The notes under the pieces: model-generated | What the model saw: the letters and a program-made list of their open reading frames with translations, nothing else | Databases searched by the model: none | What the model was told of the DNA's origin: nothing | Program-made: the position numbers and the translations under genes | Assembly: GCA_010909165.1 (NCBI GenBank) | Contig: VJWM01000068.1 | Location: forward strand, 62,001 to 126,000 | From: Anthoceros angustus | Lineage: Eukaryota > Plantae > Anthocerotophyta | Length of the DNA: 64,000 nucleotides | Direction of reading: 5' to 3' | Shown: positions 17,558-61,100 of the stretch, piece after piece | Layout: each line of letters starts with the position of its first letter | Numbering within the stretch: the first letter of the stretch is position 1

Positions 17558-20476
17558 ATGGAGAAGGCAATGGATGTGCTGCTCCGCATGGACTGCCAAG
17601 GCTATGTGCCCTCCCTGGGGATGTACAAGCATCTGTTGCAGACATGCATCCAGCACAAGTCCCTGACGGATGCCAAGCATGTGCATGCTCATTTGGCGAA
17701 GCATGGGTTAGAGTCGAGCGGGATGTTAGGTGAGGCGGTTGTCAACGCTCTGGTCCAGTGCGGAAGCCTTGTGGATGGGCTCCAGGTCTTTCAACGTTTG
17801 GTGCGGCCATCTGTGTTTGTCTGGACAGCCCTTATCTCAGGGTATGTGAAGGCTAGCCGATGTCGTGAGGCTTTGATGGTGTACCAGAAGATGCGAGAGC
17901 AGGGTGTGCATCCGAACACGTACACCTTTGTCATCTTGCTCAAAGCGTGTGGCACCTTGGCAGACTTGAAAGAGGGCAAGCGGATTCATGCGGACATTGT
18001 GAAACTCGGGTCCGAGTCTGATGTGTTTGTGGGAACGACTCTGGTAGACATGTACTCCAAATGTAACAGCGTTCAGGATGCACGAGATGTGTTTGACGGG
18101 TTGTCCGAGCGCAACGTGGTGTCATGGAATGCAATGCTTGCAGCATATGCTCGTCTTGACCAAGGGGAGGATGCTCTACAGCTTTACAGTCAAATGCAGT
18201 TGGCAGGTGTCACTCCTGATGATCGGACATTTGTCAGCATGATTCAAGCGTGTGGGAGCTTTGCCGAAAAGGAGGAGAGATCTCTGGTGGATGGCGTGCC
18301 TGTGAAGGTAAAATCTCTGTATAAAGGGAAGTCACTACATGCTGAAGCTGCTCTAAGGGGTTATGAATCTGATGTCTTCGTCGGAAGTGCTCTGGTGAGC
18401 TTGTATGCAAAGTGCGGCAGCATCGCAGAGGCACAACATGTCTTTGATGGCTTGCCACAGCGAAATGTGGTGCTATGGAGTGCTATGCTTGCAGCGTACG
18501 CACAGCAAGACCAAGGAGAGAAATGTCTGCAGCTTTACAGCCAAATGCAAGAGGTAGGTCTCAGTCCAGATGCTCGGACCTTTGTCAGCTTGCTTCAAGC
18601 ATGTGGTAGCCTTGCAGATAACGAAGAAGAGAGTCTGATTGGTGGGTTTTCCATTAAATTGCGTTCATTGCAAAAGGGAAAGGCAGTGCATGCTGAAGCA
18701 GCTCAAAGAGGCTATGACTCAAGTGTGTTTGTTGGCAGCACTCTGGTGAGCATCTATGCGAAGTGCGGGAGCATTACGGATGCACAAGGTGTATTTGAGA
18801 AGCTGTCCGTCCGTAATGTGGTTTCATGGAATGCAATGCTTGCGGCTTATGCTCGGCAAGATCAAGGAGACCAGGCTTTCCAGCTGTACAGCCGAATGCA
18901 AGAGGAACATGCTGCTCCAGATGCTTGGACGTTTGCCAGCCTGCTCCAAGCTTGTGGCAGCCTTGCAGAACAGGGAGAGAGCACTCTTGTGGATGGGGGG
19001 GCAGTCAAGTTGGAGTCGCTCTGGAAAGGGAAGGCCTTACATGCAGAAGCCAGTCGTAGAGGCTTCGAGTCAAATGCATTCATTGCTAGCTCGCTGGTCA
19101 GCATGTATGCCAAGTGTGGCAGCACCGTGGATGCAGGTGATGTGTTTGACAGGTTGCCGCACCAGGATGTTGTCTCATGGACTGCACTGCTCGCAGGTTA
19201 TGTCCAGCAGGATGAAGAAGAAAAGGCCTTGCAGCTGTATAGCAAGATGGAACAGGAAGGTGTCCCTTCAAATAGCAGGACCTTTGTCAGCATGCTCCAA
19301 GCATGTGCGTCTCTTGCAGATAAAGAAGAACCCATCGTGGTAGACGGGCAGCTTCTAAAACCCAAGTCACTTCAAAAGGGAAAGGCACTCCATGCTGAGC
19401 TCCTCTTGAGAGGATACGAGCCGGATGTATTTGTTTCCAACGCCCTCGTCTGCATGTATGCAAAGTGCGGGAGCAGTCTTCATGCACAGCAGGTGTTTGA
19501 CAGACTGCCCCAGGTGGATGTTAGGGCTTGGACTGCAATGCTGGCACAGTATGTCCACCAGGACCAAGCAGAAACAGCTCTGAGTATGTATGCTCAAATG
19601 CAGGAACAAGGCATCCGACCAAATGAAATAACCTTCGTCGTCATGCTACAAGCCTGCGGCAACATAGGAGCTCTCAACAACTGTATTGCAATTCACCAAG
19701 ACATCTTCGAGAGTGGGTTGTTAGACTGCCCTCCTAGCCTGGCTACTGCTCTGATTCACGCATACGGGAAATGCGGAAGCATGTGGCATGCTCAGCAGGT
19801 TTTTAATTCACTTACTCAGCACAATCTGTGGTCGTGCACTGCACTGATGGCAGGATACGCCCGGCAAGGAGACTGTGAGTCAAGTGTGCAACTGTATGAA
19901 GATCTCTGTTTGTCAGGCCTGAAGCCCGACGCTGTCACATTCCTGTCTCTCCTGTCTGCCTGCAACCATGCTGGAATGGTAGACAAGGGATTAGAGTTCT
20001 TCGGCTACATGACTACACACCATGGCATCACTCCAGCGATGGAGCATTATGTGACACTGATTGACCTTGTCAGTCGAGCTGGGTTGTTCAGCAAAGCTGA
20101 GGAGTTGCTCTTGGGAATGCCGATGCAGCCCAACCTGCCTGTGTGGCTATGCCTGCTTGGAGCGTGTAGAAAACACGGCCACATCGAGCTGGGTCGTCGA
20201 GCATTTGATTGGGCTGTGCATCTGCAGCCCCAAGAAGGTGCAGCTTACGTGCTTATGTCCAACATCTACGCCCATGCTGGAATGTGGGTCGATGCAAAGA
20301 AAATAGACGAGGCAAGACGAAAGGCAGGTGCATGGAAGAAACCTGCTCAAAGCAGGATTGAGCATGAGCACGAGGTGCACACCTTCTCAGTTGCAGACTG
20401 CGAACACGAACAAAGTGAGATGCTCTTTCTGCTACTCAGAGAACTGAAGGACCTTTTGCCTAGAGAGGTAACTTAG
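17558..20476 (+). CDS. PLS-class pentatricopeptide repeat protein with E1/E2/E+ end and no DYW domain (organellar RNA-editing factor type), intronless
   Basis: 972-aa ORF of P-L-S triplets (VVSWNAMLAAY / TFVxxLxAC / GSxLVxxYAKCGS), ending WLCLLGACRKHG...AYVLMSNIYA...KKPAQSRIE...VHTFSVAD. Confidence 0.95.
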   Translation: MEKAMDVLLRMDCQGYVPSLGMYKHLLQTCIQHKSLTDAKHVHAHLAKHGLESSGMLGEAVVNALVQCGSLVDGLQVFQRLVRPSVFVWTALISGYVKASRCREALMVYQKMREQGVHPNTYTFVILLKACGTLADLKEGKRIHADIVKLGSESDVFVGTTLVDMYSKCNSVQDARDVFDGLSERNVVSWNAMLAAYARLDQGEDALQLYSQMQLAGVTPDDRTFVSMIQACGSFAEKEERSLVDGVPVKVKSLYKGKSLHAEAALRGYESDVFVGSALVSLYAKCGSIAEAQHVFDGLPQRNVVLWSAMLAAYAQQDQGEKCLQLYSQMQEVGLSPDARTFVSLLQACGSLADNEEESLIGGFSIKLRSLQKGKAVHAEAAQRGYDSSVFVGSTLVSIYAKCGSITDAQGVFEKLSVRNVVSWNAMLAAYARQDQGDQAFQLYSRMQEEHAAPDAWTFASLLQACGSLAEQGESTLVDGGAVKLESLWKGKALHAEASRRGFESNAFIASSLVSMYAKCGSTVDAGDVFDRLPHQDVVSWTALLAGYVQQDEEEKALQLYSKMEQEGVPSNSRTFVSMLQACASLADKEEPIVVDGQLLKPKSLQKGKALHAELLLRGYEPDVFVSNALVCMYAKCGSSLHAQQVFDRLPQVDVRAWTAMLAQYVHQDQAETALSMYAQMQEQGIRPNEITFVVMLQACGNIGALNNCIAIHQDIFESGLLDCPPSLATALIHAYGKCGSMWHAQQVFNSLTQHNLWSCTALMAGYARQGDCESSVQLYEDLCLSGLKPDAVTFLSLLSACNHAGMVDKGLEFFGYMTTHHGITPAMEHYVTLIDLVSRAGLFSKAEELLLGMPMQPNLPVWLCLLGACRKHGHIELGRRAFDWAVHLQPQEGAAYVLMSNIYAHAGMWVDAKKIDEARRKAGAWKKPAQSRIEHEHEVHTFSVADCEHEQSEMLFLLLRELKDLLPREVT

Positions 20477-30078: not shown

Positions 30079-30129
30079 TAGGGATTAGGGATTAGGGATT
30101 GGGGATTGGGGATTGGGGATTGGGATGGG
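30079..30129. repeat. Telomere-like heptamer array GGGATT(A/G) x~7
   Basis: TAGGGATTAGGGATTAGGGATTGGGGATTGGGGATTGGGGATTGGG visible directly. Confidence 0.8.
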
Positions 30130-30350
30130 ACATGGAGCATGAAGCATAGAAAAAAGGAAGCATGGGATGGAGGAATGGGGAGGCTATGTTGTATACGATC
30201 TAGAAGGGCGGAAATGTTTTAAGTATCTTAAATGAGAGATATATTAAAATGTAAGAAATTTAATATTTAAAATTTAAACTATTTTAAAAAGAATTACTAT
30301 TTCCAACACGGTAGTGTCGGTAGCCCCATGGGATACCATAATATTTCCCT

Positions 30351-30629
30351 AGGCGCTAATGGTCACTGTGCTCTTAATATGAGCACGGAAACCAAAGCAC
30401 CAACTCACCTTGGTGAGCATGTCACATCGCAGCGGTCATGCCATCGCTCTCATCCACTCTCCCGTTCGGCACGACAGCATTTCGCACGCCCGTCGCCGCT
30501 TCACTAACCCTAATGTAACATATAATATAGCTATACCATATGTACTCTGTATTGTACCCATATGTCTACGTATTCCTGAACCCGTCTTTAGTTTGAAGAA
30601 GTGCAAACTCTAAAAGTGCCCTATCCCGC
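30351..30629 (+). repeat. Left TIR (~280 bp)
   Basis: AGGCGCTAATGGTCAC...GAAGTGCAAACTCTAAAAGTGCCCTATCC matches the reverse complement of the right end. Confidence 0.9.
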
Positions 30630-30699
30630 GCGCTCGCGAGGCCAGGCTCCAGAGCTGGCCGTGACAGAGCAAACAGAGAAGACGAATCAATTCCGATAA

Positions 30700-32690
30700 G
30701 GCCTGTGGGTGCCCCCATCATGCCTCAACCTTGCCCTTTTGAAGTGCAGAATCCGGGTCCCAGTCCTTTCTGTAAGGAGACATTGAATTGGCAGGATGGT
30801 GAGCATCTTGTCCGGCAGACGGTGACTCATGTGAAACGTTGCTACATTCCCTGGACGAGGTACCCATATTTCATTGCGGGCGAAGAGAAGTCGACGTTCT
30901 TCCCCACCAAATTGATAAGGGCCAATGTTTGGACCAGATCTGGTGTGAGGTAAAGAGGGATTTCATCTACCACTCCTCGGCACTACATCAAGTTTGCCTG
31001 TGCTTATGGCTACCGAAAGCAAACTCCTCTGGATTTTGCAGTTTGTGCGGACATCACTAACAAGCCAAAGTTAGGCAAAGGGAGCAGGCGCTCCAAGATT
31101 GCCTGTGGAGAAAGCAAGAAACGTGGGTGCTAGTTTTTGTTGTTTGTAACATAGCTGGGAATGTTTCCTCAGGTTGCTGAACTGAGACGCACATTGATTC
31201 AACGGGAGAGTATTGTCATGGTTTGCTAGCGAGTGATTCATCTTCAAATTGTACCCTTGCTCCTTATCTGTCCACAGCTAAGAAGGAGTGGGTGAAATAT
31301 AAGTTGCTACGTAAGACGACTGCTTTTCAGATCCTAGTTGACCATGAGTCTGAGGTGTTTTTAAGGAAGCATCATGATGTGCAAGCAGTCCTTGAGCGGG
31401 ATGATTTTGCTGCCTAGAGACATAAGGAATTTGCAGGCAGAGTTGGACTCCAGGGTGTGGCGATTCCATGTAAACGATGAGGTGAGTGTCAAGCTGTGGA
31501 TGGATGTCCATAGGGAGGAGGTGTTTTTTCCTTTGCCAAGAGAAGAACAACATGCCAAGGATTTTATGTTAGGCATCCAAACAGACATCATGCATATGGA
31601 CATTGATGTCGGGGTAGAGGTAAACCAAGCATGCGTCCAAAGACTTGAACTGTTTTATGCTACCTTTCCAGGAGTCTGCTAGCAGCTTTGTGAAGTATTT
31701 TAAAGACCAGTGGGGTTCTAACATGCTACAGTGGATTAAAGCAGTTAGGACAATTCCACATGCCGGACAAGACTGCAACTCGTCCATAGAAGCATATCAC
31801 AAATATCTAAAGTGCATATGTTTGAACTACAAGAAAACCCTCGTAATTGGCGATTGGATTGGCTGCTGCATATTTTGTTCGAAGAGGTTAACAGGCACTT
31901 TTGGTATGCAGCCCAGGGTAAGGCAGTTGGCATGCTTCGAAATTCCAAGCAGGAGGACATTGTGCGGAGTGCTCTCCAAAAAGCAACAGCCATATTAGAC
32001 AGCCATGTGGTCTTACCAACTCCAGACTCTCCAAATATTGCTTATGTCAACAGTCACGACAATGGGAAAGCACGTAGATATATTGTGAGTGGTGCCGGAA
32101 CCCCTTGGGGTTATTGTACATGTAAGCAAGGGACGCGAGGTTTCATATACAAACACTAGCTCAAGGTTATGCTGCTCATGGACAAGGTAGTCCCCACTCC
32201 AAAGCTGGTTGTTAGGTATTCCAGGGTTGCAGTTGCTCAAACTGAGTTCCAACACAACTTTCTGCCCAGTACTGAAGAGGACACTTCCATGTGGGAGAAT
32301 TTCCTCCCACATGACGGTGGCTTGAGGACAAGTATCCAAGGTGAGACTGGTATTCCCGTTCTTGAGCAAGCAACCGTGCGCACAGTAGGTAGATTGGAGA
32401 CGTCTCCAAGTTTGGGAGCTTTGTGCCAATAGTTGACACTCGTTTTGGAAAAGTGGCCTTTTCTTGAGCAGCATGCGAAGGGCTTATTCCAGCAAATGAT
32501 CAGACAATTAGAGGGTATGGGAGCTGGTACAGTAGGTAACACCATGCTTCCAACACTACTACTGCTAGCTGATAATAGCAATTCAGATAACAGCTTGAAA
32601 AAGAAGCTTGCTTTTTGGGAAAAAAGTAGTACTTGGAAGCTGCCATCTAAGAAGAAACAGCCCACTTTCGTGGAGCTTGCTGGATGAGTG
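30700..32690 (+). pseudogene. MULE-type transposase remnant with SWIM zinc finger; catalytic core largely deleted
   Basis: LPRDIRNL...NDEVSVKLW...FMLGIQT; FVKYFKDQW...QDCNSSIEAYHKYLK; WRLDWLLHIL; SWIM-like YCTCKQGTRGFIYKH (third Cys lost). Many stops and frameshifts, with only ~35 codons between GIQT and FVKYF. Confidence 0.75.
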
Positions 32691-33133
32691 GACACCATTT
32701 TTCCGTAATATGTGGTAGGGAATGCAAGCCTATTTGTGGTACATGGACATATAAGACATCAATTGAGAACCAACTGTAGTTGGCACTTTGTAATTTACGT
32801 TGGGCAGCTCGTGTCTTTGACCGCTTACAAAAGCTTGAACAATATAATTGCTGCAAGAGAAACTACGAGACATATCGCAGCAAGACTCTTTGCTGGAAGT
32901 GAAACCAGCACAATAGTTACAACCATAGACAGAGAACAAAAAACGACAAGAGGCACAACAATTGACAAAGGCTTGTTCACATGTTTGCTCACAAGGTCTT
33001 CACAGGCTCTGCACTCATTTGTGTCCGCATGAAAAGCTGAAATTGTTTGCACTAGAGGCGTATGTGCAGCTGTGCAGAATTATGGCAAATTATTGGCTCT
33101 GTTTTCCATCACACCACGGTCAGGAAACAATTC

Positions 33134-33898
33134 CTAAACGTAGACTGCATGAGCCCTTAGAATGATGATGCTGGAAGGGTGTCGACTTGACGCCTTTTTG
33201 ATGGAGAAGAGGCACAGGAAACTCTTGTGCAGCAGCCGGTCCAAGACTTATGTACCTTCTCCTCGTAATTCCTTCAAGCTAAACTCTTCAGGCCTAATAA
33301 AATCTCTACCAGCAGTGAATGCCGTCGCCCATGCCTCAACTGGAATCAGCAAGGAGGAGTCGAAGATGGTATTGCATTTGCCCATTCACAACGGCCTTAC
33401 ATTTTTTACACCACCCTCCCGGCGACATACCAGTGAAACATTTCACGCAACCTCTGTAGACATGTGAGCCTCTATCGTAATCCTGTATAGTGATGCGCAG
33501 AGGCACAAAGCTGAGCTGGGTAGGCTCGTCCTCCTCCAACTGAGCGACCACTGTGTTCAAGTCGAGCTTCATTCGCAGTTTTGCCACTACGGCCCTGGCC
33601 CGGCGTGGATAGGGCACTTTCAGAGTTTGCACTTCTTCAAACTAAAGACGGGTTCAGGAATACGTAGACATATAGATACAATACAGAGTACATATGGTAT
33701 AGCTATATTATGCGTTACATTAGGGTTAGTGAAGCGGCGACGGGCGCGCAAAATGCCGTCGCGCCGGATGGGCGCGCAAAATGCCGTCGCGCCGGACGGG
33801 CACGCAAAATGCCGTCGCACCGGACGGGCGCGCAAAATGCCGTCGCGCCGAACGGGAGAGTGGATGAGAGCGATGGCATGACCGCTGCGGTATGACAT
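33134..33898 (-). pseudogene. RPA70 C-terminal-like OB-fold (zinc-ribbon) gene inside the MULE; one frameshift (~33337) and one stop (33248)
   Basis: VYRGCVKCFTGMSPGGWCKKCKAVVNGQMQYHLRLLLADSS/EAWATAF fits the YxxCxxC...CxxC...Y...DxTG..W.T.F pattern of RPA1 DBD-C. A putative first exon 33898-33719 and 77-nt intron lie within the TIR. Confidence 0.75.
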
Positions 33899-33966
33899 GC
33901 TCACCATGGTGAGTTGGCGCTTTGGTTTCCGTGCTCGCATTAAGAGCACGGTGACCATTAGCGCCT
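33608..33966 (-). repeat. Right TIR, with a 28-bp subrepeat in 4 copies (1 copy in the left TIR)
   Basis: GGGCGCGCAAAATGCCGTCGCGCCGGA(C/T) x4 at ~33742-33853. Confidence 0.9.
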
Positions 33967-34329
33967 GCCTAGGAGGTCTAGACAAGGTTACTTGGAGGAC
34001 GGCCAGTTGAAAACAAAAAATACGTAACTTGATATAAGTAGTATAATATCCGTAATAAGTTACATTAACTCGTTTTGGCATTGTTCGACATCCATAATAC
34101 ACGTTTCTCTCCTAGCCATCGAAATTGCTTACACTAGGCACTTTGTCGGGTTGATGCACTTCATGGGCTGATAAGTCATCATACCAAAATCGATCAGGCT
34201 ATTTGAGGTACCAAAATTGGATCTGTACAAGCAAGTACCTAATAAAGGATTGCTAGAGAGCTGGGTACAAAAGGTTACGGGTAGAGAAATCGTTGTGGAC
34301 TTTTGTACGAGAGGCTGTGAGATGGGCTC

Positions 34330-36200
34330 CTACTTCCTCCCCCTTTTCGCAGCTGGACCTCCAGTAGAAGGAGCCCCCCTTTTAGCGGCCGCCTTGCCAC
34401 CCCTTGCAGTAGATGCTGCTTTGCCACCCCTTGCAGTAGATGCTGCTTTGCCACCCCTTGCAGTAGATGCTGCTTTGCCACCTCTCGTGCTTCTTGCTGC
34501 TAAGTTCACGCATCATTGCATACGCATCAGACCAGGCAACCATCACATGATGAGGTTCAGGCTACTGACTATCCACGAGCAACTGATGCACGTGTGCTAA
34601 CCTGCATTCTTCCGACCATTTGGTTGCTCTTCCTTCACCGTAAGGTTCAGCCTTTCCCGAACTGCCTCTGCAGAAGAAATGACTACCACTAAATTACCAA
34701 CAAGAAAAAGCAAATCAAGACCAATCACTGAACAATGGCGATATGCACACGAAGCATCAACGTCAAATACGGTCACCTGATTCAGCAGACTCCACGTTCT
34801 CTGGCAAGTTCTCATCGTCTTCTCCTTCTCCTCCCGCACCATTAGAACCATTGTTTTCATCCTCTATATCGCCATAAATCATGTCAGCACTCAGAGCTAG
34901 AGAGCTTTCACATACAGATTCAGAGCAACAAAGCATTCAAGGAACATACCACCATTGAGATCTGCCAATTCTTCTTGGACTTCTCCCTCAACATCAACCA
35001 ATGCTAGTCTTTTGGAAGGCTTCTTCACCTTTTCTGCCCAGGTGGTGGTGGTAACAAATCTGCCGATCTCACTTTGCGATCTGCTTCTCTCTGCTTGTAG
35101 GTCTTAGTAAGAGCTGCTTTAGTAGCAGGTTGCACACCCTCAAGTGGATCAGGTAGACCCTGCACAATGCCATCACGTCAACACATGGCCTTATGGCCTT
35201 GGAGGCCTGTGATCACAATGAAAAGCCATCCTCATGCTCACATCAAACTTTGATAAACTCATGATTGTGTCATAGTCCTCCTGTGTGGAATTGTAGGCCT
35301 CCATTATGTTGACAACAGATTCAGCAGCTTCATCCTGCATGATATACCATCAACCTTTTAACGCCTCCGCTAAATAGACAGATGTGTTACTTAAAACAAC
35401 CGGACCGCTTAGAGTTTGTATGTGCTAAGCGCCACATTCCAGTAGACCATTTATGATAGCAAGAACCTCGCACCTTTGGCAACCGGCGAAGAGGTTCTGT
35501 CAAGTGCATACACAAGTTCGGAAGATAGTCCAGGCGCAGTGACTCTCTGCTTTAAAGAACAGGAAATATGAACAATTTTCCTACCAGCACTCGTATCTGG
35601 TAAAAACCTACCAAAATATCGGCAAAAGCTCTCCATAACTTGCTCAGTCCAACAGCAACGCATAAAGGAGCCACTCTTCATGTGCTAACCCACGATACCT
35701 TGTTGGCTCACACTCTTTTGAAGCCAGAATATGAACATGAACGTCATCCAAAAGCGGACATTTTTTCGAACGTTGAGTTCTTCCCCAGCCATCCTCCAAA
35801 TCTATTGAAATTTTTCTCACCCTAGAACAAAAAGCAGGGCTTTCGACCCTCAGAAACAACAAGCTTTGGTTCCTCACAGCCTTTTGCGGCCGAAGACTCC
35901 CAATGACAATAAAACCTGCTTTGAAGTGAAATGTACCTGAAGAAGAGCTTCTCGCCGACCATGCATGAGAGCTGCACTGCAAAAGAGAGAGATTCAATCT
36001 AAATGAGATCACTAACCTCTGTGGTTGCAGTTGAAACAATATCTGGAATTTCACACTTAAGAAAGTTGCCACTGACGATATCTGCGTATCTGGACATTTA
36101 CCATATCCCCATCTGCAATTGATGATGCAGCACGAGCCATAAGGTCCAGTCTCTCTATACCATTGTCATCTCGTACACCACTCGGACAATAGTTCAGGTA
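34330..36200 (-). pseudogene. RFC1: Duplicate of the RFC1 3' exons (copy A of a 2053-bp tandem duplication starting at 34183/36236)
   Basis: Near-identical to 36236-38357 but lacks 89 bp between two GAAAGTT. Holds the better-preserved last exon (..GGKAASTAR x3..AKRGRK*). Confidence 0.8.
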
Positions 36201-36382
36201 ATTTTCCTACCAGCACTCGTATCTGGTAAAAACCTACCAAAATCGATCAGGCTATTTGAGGTACCAAAATTGGATCTGTACAAGCAAGTACCTAATAAAG
36301 GATTGCTAGAGAGCTGGGTACAAAAGGTTACGGGTAGAGAAATCGTTGTGGACTTTTGTACGAGAGGCTGTGAGATGGGCTC

Positions 36383-39300
36383 CTACTTCCTCCCCTTTTC
36401 GCAGCTGGACCTCCAGTAGAAGGAGCCCCTTTAGCGGCCGCCTTGCCACCCTTGCAGTAGATGCTGCTTTGCCACCCTTGCAGTAGATGCTGCTTTGCCA
36501 CCCTTGCAGTAGATGCTGCTTTGCCACCTCTCGTGCTTCTTGCTGCTAAGTTCACGCATCATTGCATACGCATCAGACCAGGCAACCATCACATGATGAG
36601 GTTCAGGCTACTGACTATCCACGAGCAACTGATGCACGTGTGCTAACCTGCATTCTTCCGACCATTTGGTTGCTCTTCCTTCACCGTAAGGTTCAGCCTT
36701 TCCCGAACTGCCTCTGCAGAAGAAATGACTACCACTAAATTACCAACAAGAAAAAGCAAATCAAGACCAATCACTGAACAATGGCGATATGCACACGAAG
36801 CATCAACGTCAAATACGGTCACCTGATTCAGCAGACTCCACGTTCTCTGGCAAGTTCTCATCGTCTTCTCCTTCTCCTCCCGCACCATTAGAACCATTGT
36901 TTTCATCCTCTATATCGCCATAAATCATGTCAGCACTCAGAGCTAGAGAGCTTTCACATACAGATTCAGAGCAACAAAGCATTCAAGGAACATACCACCA
37001 TTGAGATCTGCCAATTCTTCTTGGACTTCTCCCTCAACATCAACCAATGCTAGTCTTTTGGAAGGCTTCTTCACCTTTTTCTGCCCAGGTGGTGGTGGTA
37101 ACAAATCTGCCGATCTCACTTTGCGATCTGCTTCTCTCTGCTTGTAGGTCTTAGTAAGAGCTGCTTTAGTAGCAGGTTGCACACCCTCAAGTGGATCAGG
37201 TAGACCCTGCACAATGCCATCACGTCAACACATGGCCTTATGGCCTTGGAGGCCTGTGATCACAATGAAAAAGCCATCCTCATGCTCACATCAAACTTTG
37301 ATAAACTCATGATTGTGTCATAGTCCTCCTGTGTGGAATTGTAGGCCTCCATTATGTTGACAACAGATTCAGCAGCTTCATCCTGCATGATATACCATCA
37401 ACCTTTTAACGCTCCGCTAAATAGACAGATGTGTTACTTAAAAACAACCGGACCGCTTAGAGTTTGTATGTGCTAAGCGCCACATTCCAGTAGACCATTT
37501 ATGATAGCAAGAACCTACGCACCTTTGGCAACCGGCGAAGAGGTTCTGTCAAGTGCATACACAAGTTCGGAAGATAGTCCAGGCGCAGTGACTCTCTGCT
37601 TTAAAGAACAGGAAATATGAACAATTTTCCTACCAGCACTCGTATCTGGTAAAAAAACCTACCAAAATATCGGCAAAAAGCTCTCCATAACTTGCTCAGT
37701 CCAACAGCAACGCATAAAGGAGCCACTCTTCATGTGCTAACCCACAACCACGATACCTTGTTGGCTCACACTCTTTTGAAGCCAGAATATGAACATGAAC
37801 GTCATCCAAAAGCCGGACATTTTTTCGGAACGTTGAGTTCTTCCCCAGCCATCCTCCAAATCTATTGAAATTTTTCTCACCCTAGAACAAAAAGCAGGGC
37901 TTTCGACCCTCAGAAACAACAAGCTTTGGTTCCTCACAGCCTTTTGCGGCCGAAGACTCCCAATGACAATAAAACCTGCTTTGAAGTGAAATGTACCTGA
38001 AGAAGAGCTTCTCACGACCATGCATGAGAGCTGCACTGCAAAAGAGAGAGATTCAATCTAAATGAGATCACTAACCTCTGTGGTTGCAGTTGAAACAATA
38101 TCTGGAATTTCACACTTAAGAAAGTTCATCACTACACGTGCCACATCATGGAATTGTGTCCAATGCTGGTACGTACGGGATGATACTTGTCATAAATGCC
38201 CCAGTTTGAGAAAGTTGCCACTGACGATATCTGCGTATCTGGACATTTACCATATCCCCATCTGCAATTGATGATGCAGCACGAGCCATAAGGTCCAGTC
38301 TCTCTATACCATTGTCATCTCGTACACCACTCGGACAATAGTTCAGGTAATTTTCCTGGATCAACAAGTGGATGTAGTAGGCCTTATCAGGTACTATCCA
38401 TAGATAGCGGGACACTCTCAAAGATGATGGTGCAAAATTTGATACAGCAAGCAAACAGATATATATGATACCTGAATCAGAAGGGGCACCAGGTCCATAT
38501 CTGACATGGCTGCATCCAACCGCTCATCCATTCGTAACCTACCCCCATCATAACCCATTAATCTGCAAGAGCCAACGTACTATCATCAGGGTCACCTAAG
38601 ACCTTTACGTTCTGACAGTGACTCTTTTGAGACGAGCTGAGGTTTGAACGTACTGGTCAACTGCAGCAAAAGGAGAAACATCTCGATCTTTAGCACCAGC
38701 AAGCAGACGTGCACGCACATCTGCAAACTTAAGAACGCGTGTCTGAAGGCTCATGTATTCCAGTTGATTCAAAGCCATCCTCATGTCCCCATTAGTGCGT
38801 TCCCCGAGCTCTTCAAGCGATACCTGAAACAAGGTATGCAAGTTAGAGGATGCATTTTCTTATTTCCGCAACCTACATGCTGACACAGGCACCTTAGAAT
38901 CATATTACCTCGTCAACTTGAAGGCCCTCTAGCTGTGCTATTTGCTTAAGCCGCTTGGCCATCTGCAGAAGCAGCCGCAACTCAGCAAGAATGTCTTCAG
39001 GATAATTTCAAATTACTGCAACATGTAAGTCATGACACTCATGATTAAGATAACAACCAGACGAGGCAGCATCACCTGCTGTTTTGTAGGCTTCCTATAG
39101 GAAAGGAGGAGGCAATAATTCAGGAGGCTCTTTAGCTTCTGACTGTATCGATCATTACATATACAGATGATAGGAATCTTGCTGACTTTGATGCTTGCTA
39201 TCAGCTCTGCAATCCCCCCACGATCCCCTCCAGACATACCATCAACTTCGTCCATTATCAAGGCTGCTTTGTGTGAATTTTTGTTCCTGTACAACAAGAA

Positions 39301-45207: not shown

Positions 45208-46026
45208 TCACTGCCGCAGCCTGCTGGCAAAAGCCTTGGCCAAGGAAGCAACAGCGCTAGGTTTCCCTGAACTCTGGAGAGTGAAGACTACCTCCTTGGT
45301 CTTGCCAAAGTAGACCTGATCCAGCACATTCCGCAACTTGCTCTCCATCTCCTCGATCATCTTCCCCATGTTACTGACGTGACCTTGTCCCAGCCCTAAG
45401 TCGGATTCCACGCGCCTGGTGATGGAGCCGGAGAGGCTGAAGGACTTGGCGCCTCGATCGGCCACCTGCACCTCGTCAGCCGTGCTGAGAGACAGCATGA
45501 CGGTGCTGGTGAGGCAGTAGTGGAAGGAGGCGTCCCGCTCGCCGCTGGCAACCTCGATGACGTGAATGGCCTCCCACATGCCCTGCTGCAGCAGGCCTCT
45601 GCGGCCCTGCCCGGACTGCGACCCGTCCTTCTTGATGAGGAAGCAGGCAGCGAACCCCTCCCCGTCCTGCGGCTCCCACACGTACACTGACGAGCTGCCG
45701 CCTTCGTAGTACTGGTCCCGGTAGATGGCGAAAACCTCGTTCGCGTCCTGCTCCAGCTTGCGCAGCGCAGCCGGCGGCTGCGCGCCATCTTCCAGCGTGG
45801 GGAAGTAGGTGCTGGACCAAGGCGATCTGTAGGAATCCCCGTCGCGATTGTAGTCGCACAAGAGAAACTGCTTGCCGTGCTCCTCGTCCCACGCGACTTC
45901 CAGAGGCTGATCAACTCGAGACAGCAGATCCGAGGAATGATGCGGCAGCAGAGCCAGGAGCGAGCTCAGCGTCTGCTCGGACTTGATGGGAGGCATCCGC
46001 CTGACCAGATTCATGGCCGCCTCCAT
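45208..46026 (-). CDS. CAPZB: F-actin capping protein subunit beta, intronless (272 aa; an in-frame upstream ATG at 46035 is possible)
   Basis: MEAAMNLVRRMPP...LLCDYNRDGDSYRSPWS...YRDQYYEGGSSSVY.W...FAACFLIKK...WEAIHV...YCLTSTVML...H..NMGKMIEEMESKLRN.LDQVYFGKTKE. Confidence 0.95.
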   Translation of the reverse strand: MEAAMNLVRRMPPIKSEQTLSSLLALLPHHSSDLLSRVDQPLEVAWDEEHGKQFLLCDYNRDGDSYRSPWSSTYFPTLEDGAQPPAALRKLEQDANEVFAIYRDQYYEGGSSSVYVWEPQDGEGFAACFLIKKDGSQSGQGRRGLLQQGMWEAIHVIEVASGERDASFHYCLTSTVMLSLSTADEVQVADRGAKSFSLSGSITRRVESDLGLGQGHVSNMGKMIEEMESKLRNVLDQVYFGKTKEVVFTLQSSGKPSAVASLAKAFASRLRQ

Positions 46027-46895
46027 CTCCGCCATCTTCGAGGCTTCGAATGCCGCAAAGACGACAGCCGGGACGAGCGCGGTAGAGACCAAGGCTCGCA
46101 CGAAACCTGCGGTCCGCCAACCATAGTTCGATCATAAGGCTCACGGCCCAGGGAACTTTAGCAGAGCTCACTTTAGTTGGACGTTTTGGGTGCCCTACGA
46201 TGTACACGAGGCAGCGGCGGGAACGTATGTACTGCAGGTATGTACTCGGGACTGTCTACACACGTACAAATTGAAGAAACCAGTGGTAGTGAAGATGCAA
46301 ACAAGACTGCAAAACCGCCAGAGACTTCAGGAGCAAGGTTATTAAAAAAATAGTCAGTGTATGTGCCTGTGCCCTTCATTTTTTTTTGTCCTTGGGCTGC
46401 TGAGTGGGACGATGTCCTAACAACATCGTGGGTGCAGGCAAAATCCTGCAACTTCAGACCTGTCCGAATGTGCGAGGTGCCGTCATAAGCAGCTCTCCAG
46501 GACAAACTACGCTTCAGTCATGAAAGTACAGAAAGAGCTTCCTGGAATTCCCTGCCAAGTGCTGTTTAGCTCAGTGATACCTTGTGTTGTGGTCTTGAAA
46601 AGCATCCAGTTCCACATTGAGGGAGAACTCTGCTGATGTGTTGCAGACCTGAGGTTGAGAAACGGGCCTGGAGTGTCACAGGATTGCTGTCGAAGCCTCG
46701 GCTGTGACCACGGCCTAGTATGTGCACCTGCTCTGATGTGTGGTCTCTGTGTTCAAACCCGTCTTCTGCTGTTTGTGGTCTCTTGTGTTCAATCCGTCTT
46801 CGTCTTTCTACTGCAGCTGTGTCCTGGAGGGTGATTCATTGCACAAACATTCGCTGCCACTGCCATGTGGGAGTTGGGGTATCCGGACACTTTAC

Positions 46896-58195: not shown

Positions 58196-61100
58196 CTTCG
58201 TTTGATTAGATACATAGTATATAGTTTTCATAACTTTGTTTGATTGAGATGCCTGTTCAGGGACTCCCGTCCACATACCCTTAGCTGGGACGATGTGGAT
58301 TTGCGGGCCAAGACTTCAGGGCTCCCAAGAAGGTGATCCGTAGCTATCTCAGTTCCGGGCTTCACAAGTTCAGAGCCAAGTAGGTGGGTAGGTAACGACT
58401 CCTGTGTGACTTGCAAATTCCGTGGTAGATGGAATGGCACCTCATCGTCACATGGGTGACTTCTATTGTGGAGGACAGCTCAGAGCATTGCCATATGACG
58501 CCAAACATTCGGTAATTGACGTCTATTATTGAAGAAAAGATGAATGGAAGAAAAATGAATGGAATACAAACGTTGTAGAGCTCAACGCAATGAGCCTCAT
58601 CAGATATCGATGCACCAACGAAATGCTGTGGGGATCTTCGTAAGCAGCTTGTCTTACGATTGTTTTTGGACTGGGCCATAATTACAAAATATTACACATT
58701 GTTTATGAAATCCATTCACGACCTGCACCTGCATGTTGAGATAAGCACGAAGCACACCAGGCAGGAAGATGAGCATGAGAAATGGACAAAACACTCAGCT
58801 CACTGAGTTGCGAGCCAGAGTTTCAGGAAGGCTCTGCAGCCCGTCGGAATTTATATTCCTGCTGAAGCTGTGCCTCTCAGGAGTCCTCGATAACACATCT
58901 GGAGTCCTTGAAATCTCTCAGGAGTCATCGGAAATCTCTCAGGAGTCCTCGAAATCTTTCAGGAGTCCTCGGAAATTTCTCAGGAGTCCTCGGAAATCTC
59001 TCAGGAGTCCTCGGAAATCTCTCAGGAGTCCTCGGAAATCTCTCTGGTGTTCTCGGAAATCTCTCAGGAGTCCTCGGAAATCTCTCTGGTGTTCTCGGAA
59101 ACCTCGAGTCTACCGATGGCCGAGCACTCACGGATGTCCTTGCACTGGCGCTGAGGAAATCGCGACGCCACTCCGTGGAAATCCGAGCAGGATCATCGTC
59201 GGCTTCCTGTGATCGACAGAGCATCTGCTGATCACGTTCGGCTGAGCGTATACTCCGGTTCCATAAGCCAAATGGCCTAAGTCCTGAGTCTGGGAGGCGA
59301 CGCAGCAATTGACGTAATTGTCCCTCAATCGTCGAAGAACCTTGCAAGCGGAACACGCCGGGTTCCATCTCCTCAGCGCTCTCAGCAGGGACAGACTGAG
59401 GCTGACGGAAGCGCAAGGATCCACCTCCGCTGCCTTCTTCGATCCCGCCAGAGAATTGGATCCTGGCGCCTTGGGAGCCTTCACCGTGGCTGCCATCCTA
59501 AAGCCTCTACCTGCGCATCTCCAGGCTGCAAAACAATACGGGAGCGTCATCAAATGCTTCACAGAAATTTCAATGAGCACATCCAGATCTGTTCTGTGCA
59601 AATCCGTTTTGCACACAAAATGAATGGAATACAAACGTTGTAGAGCTCAACGCAATGAGCCTCATCAGATATCGATGCACCAACGAAATGCTGTGGGGAT
59701 CTTCGTAAGCAGCTTGTCTTACGATTGTTTTTGGACTGGGCCATAATTACAAAATATTACACATTGTTTATGAAATCCATTCACGACCTGCACCTGCATG
59801 TTGAGATAAGCACGAAGCACACCAGGCAGGAAGATGAGCATGAGAAATGGACAAAACACTCAGCTCACTGAGTTGCGAGCCAGAGTTTCAGGAAGGCTCT
59901 GCAGCCCGTCGGAATTTATATTCCTGCTGAAGCTGTGCCTCTCAGGAGTCCTCGATAACACATCTGGAGTCCTTGAAATCTCTCAGGAGTCATCGGAAAT
60001 CTCTCAGGAGTCCTCGAAATCTTTCAGGAGTCCTCGGAAATTTCTCAGGAGTCCTCGGAAATCTCTCAGGAGTCCTCGGAAATCTCTCAGGAGTCCTCGG
60101 AAATCTCTCTGGTGTTCTCGGAAATCTCTCAGGAGTCCTCGGAAATCTCTCTGGTGTTCTCGGAAACCTCGAGTCTACCGATGGCCGAGCACTCACGGAT
60201 GTCCTTGCACTGGCGCTGAGGAAATCGCGACGCCACTCCGTGGAAATCCGAGCAGGATCATCGTCGGCTTCCTGTGATCGACAGAGCATCTGCTGATCAC
60301 GTTCGGCTGAGCGTATACTCCGGTTCCATAAGCCAAATGGCCTAAGTCCTGAGTCTGGGAGGCGACGCAGCAATTGACGTAATTGTCCCTCAATCGTCGA
60401 AGAACCTTGCAAGCGGAACACGCCGGGTTCCATCTCCTCAGCGCTCTCAGCAGGGACAGACTGAGGCTGACGGAAGCGCAAGGATCCACCTCCGCTGCCT
60501 TCTTCGATCCCGCCAGAGAATTGGATCCTGGCGCCTTGGGAGCCTTCACCGTGGCTGCCATCCTAAAGCCTCTACCTGCGCATCTCCAGGCTGCAAAACA
60601 ATACGGGAGCGTCATCAAATGCTTCACAGAAATTTCAATGAGCACATCCAGATCTGTTCTGTGCAAATCCGTTTTGCACACAAAATGATATCCTCCTGAG
60701 CTCTGCAACAACCTTTCAAGACCAACAAAATTTGAAGACCTTGCAACACAATTACGAGATCTTGCAAAAGTCTCGCAGCAGATCATCCACTAAGCCTGCG
60801 CTTTCATTCTCAAACATCACCCCTGCCCGCCATCACCGCAACAGCAGACAGGACAGGAAGTTTAGGTCCTGTCACCTGTCAGGAGCTCCAATTGCCTGAG
60901 CTTGTGTTTGGAAAACCTGAAGCGCCGGCCTCCACCGAAGGCGGAGCCGATCCTGGAGTCCGGGACGACAGTATCCTCAATATGTATCTCACTCCGCGAG
61001 GAGACGACAGAACTGAGCGTAGCGATGCGGAGCTGGGTGTGGACAAGATGCCGTGCCAACAGCAAGAGTCACCACTGCTCAATGAACCTGAAGCCCCGGG

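Follow-up and report, generated by a model that had tools for sequence, protein, structure and literature searches.

The closest described counterparts of the element reported here are Mutator-like elements (MULEs) of the maize MuDR type. The element lies at 30351-33966 of a 64,000-nucleotide stretch of DNA from Anthoceros angustus (Anthocerotophyta; GenBank assembly GCA_010909165.1, contig VJWM01000068.1, positions 62,001 to 126,000 of the forward strand), which we call the window and to which all coordinates refer. According to the main texts of two accounts, MuDR has long terminal inverted repeats (TIRs) and two convergent genes, mudrA and mudrB, each read from a TIR, the second gene being an accessory needed for reinsertion; MuDR-type MULEs carry a SWIM finger downstream of the catalytic region, and deletion derivatives are common among them (PMC6446971, PMC12973397). 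The Anthoceros element shares the long TIRs and the two convergent TIR-proximal genes, has a SWIM-like motif, is itself a deletion derivative, and its second gene was probably likewise an accessory. Unlike in MuDR, however, its second gene does not resemble mudrB but the zinc-ribbon OB fold of RPA70 DBD-C, its TIRs hold an ATG exon and an intron common to both genes, its target-site duplication (TSD) is not cleanly 9 bp, and the DDE core appears to be gone in this copy.

Lineage-specific accessory genes are carried repeatedly by MULEs, a pattern into which the Anthoceros gene would fit. The same main texts name mudrB, vanB/vanC (VANDAL/Hiun), mutB (Mutyl), Peptidase_C48 (KI-MULE), Zf-GRF, NAM-associated and PMD (PMC6446971, PMC12973397), and one of them counts 335 singleton Pfam domains in MULEs (PMC12973397). 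An RPA-type OB fold is not among the accessory genes named in these main texts, and a full-text literature search for Mutator or MULE together with RPA70 or Rep_fac-A_C returned nothing relevant.

Genes of this type are described from plant Helitrons. Like the Anthoceros gene on its most likely reading, the PHRPA genes (Rep_fac-A_C, DUF223) are transposon-borne, highly diverged relatives of RPA70 with a C4 zinc-ribbon OB fold, and their products are presumed to bind single-stranded DNA (ssDNA) during transposition (PMC4683698). They sit beside RepHel on rolling-circle elements, contain multiple OB folds, are split into many exons (8 in Mothra PHRPA, which has 472 aa) and are known from monocots and dicots only (PMC4683698). 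In contrast, the gene described here has one putative OB fold, apparently intronless, lies inside a TIR element and gives no Pfam match. Pack-MULEs are a further point of comparison, since they too have MULE TIRs around non-transposase coding sequence, which in their case is transcribed from the TIR. Here, however, transposase remnants are retained, and the extra gene is a complete domain, in phase with a leader in the TIR, without detectable likeness to the canonical host gene.

We conclude that 30351-33966 is probably a Mutator-type TIR transposon with two genes, now dead and reduced by an internal deletion. With a probability of roughly 0.55, it is a Mutator-type element whose RPA-like second gene was a true accessory gene of its family; we infer that this gene belonged to the element family and does not stem from a recent host capture.

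Terminal inverted repeats and leader

The ends of the element and the leader sequences within them are as follows; the TIRs were delimited by inverted-repeat search and alignment.

30351-30626: left TIR, 276 bp, with one degenerate 28-bp unit
33607-33966: right TIR, 360 bp, with 84 extra bases relative to the left arm
33739-33850: four GC-rich 28-bp tandem units inside the right TIR, each with a short palindrome
33719-33907, minus strand: candidate leader exon for the right gene, beginning with an ATG (CACCATGG context) and open over 63 codons, in part through the 28-bp units
33642-33718, minus strand: candidate intron in the right TIR, 77 nt, GT..AG, 35% GC, phase 0
30410-30591, plus strand: left-TIR copy of the leader, start codon now TTG, 35 codons, then a 77-nt intron (30515-30591)
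30344-30353: candidate left TSD copy, imperfect, partner of 33964-33973
33964-33973: candidate right TSD copy, imperfect, partner of 30344-30353

An earlier note on this DNA, made from the letters alone, had proposed TIRs of about 280 bp around a decayed Mutator-like transposon; the TIRs and the decay were borne out. In a gapped alignment the two arms are identical at 272/288 aligned bases (94%) and differ in length by a single 84-bp indel, equal to 3 x 28 bp. Many of the differences between left and right are of the CpG-to-TpG type. Both the TIR tip, GGCGCTAATGG..., and a 37-nt word from the inner part of the TIR occur in the two arms and nowhere else in the 64-kb window (chance expectation 0). 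Neither a second copy of the element nor an empty site was found in the window (tblastn with all pieces, blastn with the flanks), and a metagenome scan gave no match to a 28-nt TIR word or to the RPA-like piece.

The 28-bp units number four in the right TIR and one in the left (30473-30494). In each, the palindrome GGCGCG...CGCGCC surrounds a ATTTTGCGCGCC core, and the units are candidate transposase-binding or promoter repeats. We take the ATTTTGCGCGCC core to depart at a single position from TTTSSCGC, the consensus of plant E2F sites; should this likeness be genuine, expression would be linked to S phase or meristems.

The second gene starts as follows. An ATG at 33907, within the right TIR, opens the leader exon; the candidate donor GTAACG begins at 33718, the candidate acceptor CTTTAG ends at 33642, and the splice would lead in phase into a 101-codon stop-free frame at 33641-33339 on the minus strand. 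There is no non-coding spacer between the right TIR and the RPA-like coding frame, that is, the gene abuts the TIR. In the left TIR, the exon after the 77-nt intron stops near 30697. That the ATG exon lies in the TIR and that the 77-nt intron would splice in frame speaks for a gene proper to the element rather than one captured recently from the host. Since both reading frames begin in or at the TIRs and point inward, the convergent position proposed for this gene, corresponding to that of mudrB, is confirmed: it reads in from the right TIR, opposite the transposase.

Repeats flank the element on both sides. A heptamer microsatellite, (GGGATTA/GGGATTG)n, lies at 30081-30129, 220 bp to the left. 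Immediately to the right are two direct copies, 34182-34700 and 36235-36746, which are 98.7% identical, 2053 bp apart, and contain 27-bp tandem repeats (34383-34490 and 36431-36500); they could represent a tandem duplication or the termini of a different repeat.

The RPA-like gene

Behind the leader, the second gene is preserved in consecutive pieces on the minus strand.

33339-33641, minus strand: RPA-like piece 1, 101 codons, stop-free; linker, first strands, zinc ribbon and next strand
33251-33346, minus strand: RPA-like piece 2, shifted by one base; IPVEAWATAF strand and a helix-like stretch; TAA at 33248-33250
33137-33247, minus strand: RPA-like piece 3, tentatively assigned, in the frame of piece 2; ends at TAG 33134-33136
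32828-32968, minus strand: hydrophobic tail in the same frame, two segments with Kyte-Doolittle values above 2 (32837-32968); TAA at 32825-32827

Piece 1 holds a zinc ribbon, CxxC-x11-CxxC, at 33399-33458 on the minus strand; its first Cys pair is preceded by an aromatic residue and its second by a Trp. Strand-like segments precede it (33477-33509 and the HVYRGC stretch), and an alternating hydrophobic strand that ends in ...LLLAD at 33345 follows. The IPVEAWATAF strand (33317-33346) stands in another frame, which places a one-base frameshift near 33340-33350. All peptide strings that had been quoted as the signature of the RPA1 C-terminal domain are present, the last of them out of frame with the ribbon. 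Two strand-like stretches in piece 3, 33194-33226 and 33143-33175, lie where the last strands of the OB fold would be expected. The putative OB-fold region is contiguous, without introns, and holds a complete domain in order. We take the succession of strand, strand, zinc ribbon, strand, strand, helix, strand, strand across the pieces to be that of RPA70 DBD-C.

The frame between the OB-fold region and the hydrophobic tail is broken by stops at 33136 and 33082, and the link of the tail to the RPA-like gene in this copy is weak. The tail region is open on both strands, with 107 codons at 32709-33029 (plus) versus 84 codons at 32828-33079 (minus), and either strand, or neither, may have been coding there.

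The transposase remnant

The plus strand carries the remains of a transposase gene.

31365-31586, plus strand: transposase remnant, ending in ...FMLGIQTD (31563-31586)
31587-31686, plus strand: apparent deletion junction, about 100 bp where the D..D..CxxH core is expected
31687-31812, plus strand: transposase remnant with N-S-S-I-E-A-Y-H (31774-31812), frameshift near 31812
31815-32687, plus strand: C-terminal part of the transposase in one frame, with the SWIM-like motif inside

The FMLGIQTD stretch resembles, in our judgement, the segment before the first catalytic Asp of SWIM/FAR1-type MULE transposases, and the N-S-S-I-E-A-Y-H...K stretch presumably corresponds to the catalytic-Glu segment of FAR1/MURA-type transposases. 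The D..D..CxxH core normally takes up about 250 codons. Only about 100 bp separate the two segments, and the catalytic core therefore appears to have been deleted between 31587 and 31686, so that a MURA-type DDE core could not be found in this copy. Downstream, the frame 31749-32687 contains 2 internal stops in 313 codons, a degree of openness matched by 3% of such windows outside the element. Within it lies a SWIM-like motif, CxC-x10-(Y)xH (32115-32156, plus strand), in which Tyr replaces the third Cys and which is directly followed by a stop codon.

In a feature search of the ESM-Atlas, the 136-aa SWIM piece fell next to SWIM-type clusters at 0.91 (149/256 shared features, recognition 2317). 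Sequence-based searches gave no such support: no piece matched the Pfam families MULE (PF10551), SWIM, FAR1 or Transposase_mut even at E<=10, phmmer against the PDB (E<=10) found nothing relevant for the transposase pieces, and a word-indexed protein search returned no scoring candidate for the SWIM piece. The SWIM/MULE transposase suggested in the earlier note is made plausible by the motif and the Atlas neighbours, but not by a Pfam match. A place of the element among the Mutator-type transposons appears likely to us. The transposase and the RPA-like gene have decayed to a similar degree.

Evidence on a proposed RPA70-type accessory gene

The nature of the second gene was examined with profile, sequence, feature and fold searches. 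A regular expression for the ribbon and the following strand, written after the motif had been seen, matched once in the six-frame translation of the window and in none of 100 Markov-1 random sequences. In the ESM-Atlas, RPA-like piece 1 fell next to Rep_fac-A_C clusters at 0.93, with 181/256 shared features; 19/30 matches were of this type, and the ten best named matches all belonged to one clan. Although 4-10% of shuffled proteins reach 0.9 with this tool, 181 shared features lie in the range associated with true family members. Among the tools used, only the ESM-Atlas neighbours support the names Rep_fac-A_C and SWIM, since the profile and sequence searches were blank.

Several results weigh against the reading of the gene as an RPA70-type accessory gene. 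The Atlas recognition of the RPA-like piece was 2050, below the level of 2300 under which a high score is weakened. The earlier note had named the lack of an OB-fold profile match as a reason to abandon its proposal, and no match to Rep_fac-A_C (PF08646) was indeed found on the three separate pieces, even at E<=10. In these Pfam searches 10 open reading frame (ORF) pieces were run at E<=1 and 8 trimmed pieces at E<=10, the RPA-like pieces apart and unjoined; matches to BNR_4, HTH_HVO_0163_N, Headcase and TMEM154 were dismissed as noise. Likewise, phmmer searches of the PDB with four pieces (E<=10) gave nothing relevant, a 14-bit acylhydrolase match being due to chance. An exhaustive HMMER search of 1.84 billion representative proteins with the 101-aa RPA-like piece gave no credible match. 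Its lone match was to a 655-aa repetitive protein in which the same 15-residue stretch was matched nine times, and we regarded it as junk. The word-indexed protein search returned no scoring candidate for the RPA-like piece. An AlphaFold2 model of the piece, computed without an alignment, reached a predicted local distance difference test (pLDDT) value of 50.6 and was unusable; Foldseek found no meaningful match to it in the PDB, and matches of the LC3/GABARAP type were noise arising from this model.

Further reservations concern the gene structure and the element itself. The leader exon runs through the 28-bp units, whose number depends on the arm, and is possibly untranslated. It is open through these units in all three frames, and the 84-bp difference between the arms keeps its frame, which has a one-in-three chance. 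A Met at 33572 offers an alternative start for the RPA-like frame, and the leader may be a 5' untranslated region with a leader intron, with translation from this Met. Stop counts for the frame that would join the OB fold to the tail are not significant, a quarter of random windows being just as open. The TSD is ambiguous: the flanks of the element hold no clean 9-bp duplication, and the best readings, 6/8 as 8 bp or 7/10 as 10 bp (P about 0.03 versus random site pairs), are partly owed to a CCTAGG palindrome at both element ends. Finally, all evidence comes from a single decayed copy, and copies of one amplified deletion derivative could not separate an accessory gene from captured cargo.

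The blank Pfam result is tempered by the fact that no single piece spans more than half a domain of a highly diverged family. Among its transposon-borne members, identity is only about 21% (PMC4683698). Taken together, we regard it as likely that the second gene is RPA70C-like; its identity as an RPA70 C-terminal domain is plausible from the sequence, that is, suggested and not proven. The proposed signature of the RPA1 C-terminal OB fold is supported by the ribbon, the strand order and the Atlas neighbours, and fails at the profile match of the separate pieces. The broader proposal of a MULE with its own RPA-like accessory protein is partly supported: the geometry is as described and the RPA70-C likeness plausible, but the OB-fold profile search of the pieces does not speak for it.

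Alternative explanations

The alternative that survives best is captured cargo. A non-autonomous deletion-derivative MULE would have taken up an RPA-like fragment once, in the style of a Pack-MULE, and then been amplified; the source could have been a diverged host paralogue, a retrocopy or a Helitron RPA gene, and the frame would never have served the transposon. Capture of host fragments by MULEs is very frequent (PMC6446971), 30351-33966 is itself a deletion derivative, and an intact copy has not come to light. However, the frame starts exactly at the 3' splice site in the TIR, in phase with the TIR ATG exon, with no spacer between TIR and coding sequence, and it holds a whole domain in order, which is more than one exon's worth. 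Furthermore, likeness to canonical RPA70 is undetectable in Pfam and PDB and the TIRs differ by 6%, so the gene must already have been highly diverged from host RPA1 at insertion, and this divergence excludes a recent capture of host RPA1. As for a Helitron source, the RPA genes of plant Helitrons have to date been found in angiosperms alone (PMC4683698). We therefore consider captured cargo rather unlikely.

Distinctly less likely, in our view, is a second gene that did belong to the element but encoded some other small zinc-ribbon protein, with a superficial likeness to Rep_fac-A_C. Such a protein would agree with the uniformly blank profile, sequence and fold searches, and also with the Atlas caveats given above, namely the 0.9 reached by 4-10% of shuffled proteins and a recognition of 2050 against the level of 2300. 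On the other hand, the 181 shared features fit true family members, 19/30 neighbours are Rep_fac-A_C, and both the residues around the ribbon and the downstream order of strands and helix fit DBD-C.

Zisupton transposases also carry a SWIM finger. Assignment to another SWIM-bearing or unclassified TIR superfamily, for example as a Zisupton-like element (8-bp TSDs) or a lineage of its own of the At1g60560 type, would agree with the undetected MULE DDE domain (Pfam) and with an 8-bp best TSD candidate at 6/8, but we hold it to be very improbable. The Mutator pattern consists of inverted repeats hundreds of bp long, a pair of convergent genes next to them and a SWIM finger downstream of the catalytic-Glu region, and TSDs of 8-11 bp fall within the MULE range (PMC6446971).

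Proposed mechanism

If the second gene was an accessory gene of the family, the intact element could have worked as follows. The left TIR would lead into a SWIM-type transposase gene, which in this copy has apparently been stripped of its catalytic core, is disrupted by stops and frameshifts and has an altered start codon. On the other side, the exon in the right TIR would be joined across the 77-nt intron to a convergent second gene, about 270 codons long. Its product would be built around one OB fold with a C4 zinc ribbon, like that at the C-terminus of RPA70 (DBD-C, Rep_fac-A_C), possibly followed by the hydrophobic tail. Both genes would be transcribed inward from the TIRs, with the 28-bp repeats as putative binding or promoter sites. 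The transposase would then cut and paste the element, and the RPA-like protein might bind ssDNA at the excision gap or at the integration intermediate; alternatively, it might dock onto host RPA32/RPA14, as DBD-C does. In either case it might aid reinsertion or gap repair, the step that needs MURB in maize. The copy at 30351-33966 would be mobile only with proteins supplied by intact relatives.

A more specific picture, which we think unlikely to hold in full, is that of a Mutator lineage of non-seed land plants in which a MURB-type helper has been replaced by a single-domain, possibly membrane-tethered RPA70C-like ssDNA binder, with both genes expressed from the TIRs by way of a common spliced leader. 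Such an RPA gene on a TIR transposon outside the angiosperms could also shed light on the origin of the RPA-like genes of plant Helitrons, for which horizontal transfer from an unknown donor is currently invoked.

Other features of the window

Elsewhere in the window, a PPR gene of the PLS class (17558-20476, plus strand) is intact and intronless and encodes 972 aa, with Pfam matches to PPR_2 (2e-107) and, at the C-terminus, to E_motif (1e-10). This gene marks the host as a land plant; the fern origin supposed in the earlier note goes beyond what the window shows. The beta subunit of F-actin capping protein is encoded by a single uninterrupted full ORF at 45208-46101 on the minus strand (Pfam 1e-90). 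This gene normally bears introns in plants, and the intronless copy may be a processed retrocopy. At 58769-60786, a set of ORFs (147, 163 and about 168-197 aa) is repeated with the same lengths at an offset of 1065 bp, which suggests a tandem duplication of about 1.07 kb.

Implications

The manner and timing of Mutator reinsertion are set by accessory genes, and to our knowledge an understanding of these is limited to MURB and a small number of genes for anti-silencing factors or proteases. Given that the copy described here is dead, the value of the finding lies in the element family. If the accessory-gene reading is true, it would represent a second, independent recruitment of RPA by transposons, after that by Helitrons, and would suggest that cut-and-paste transposition is limited by a single-stranded intermediate or by a step of gap repair. 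It would furthermore extend the known range of transposon-borne RPA genes beyond the angiosperms.

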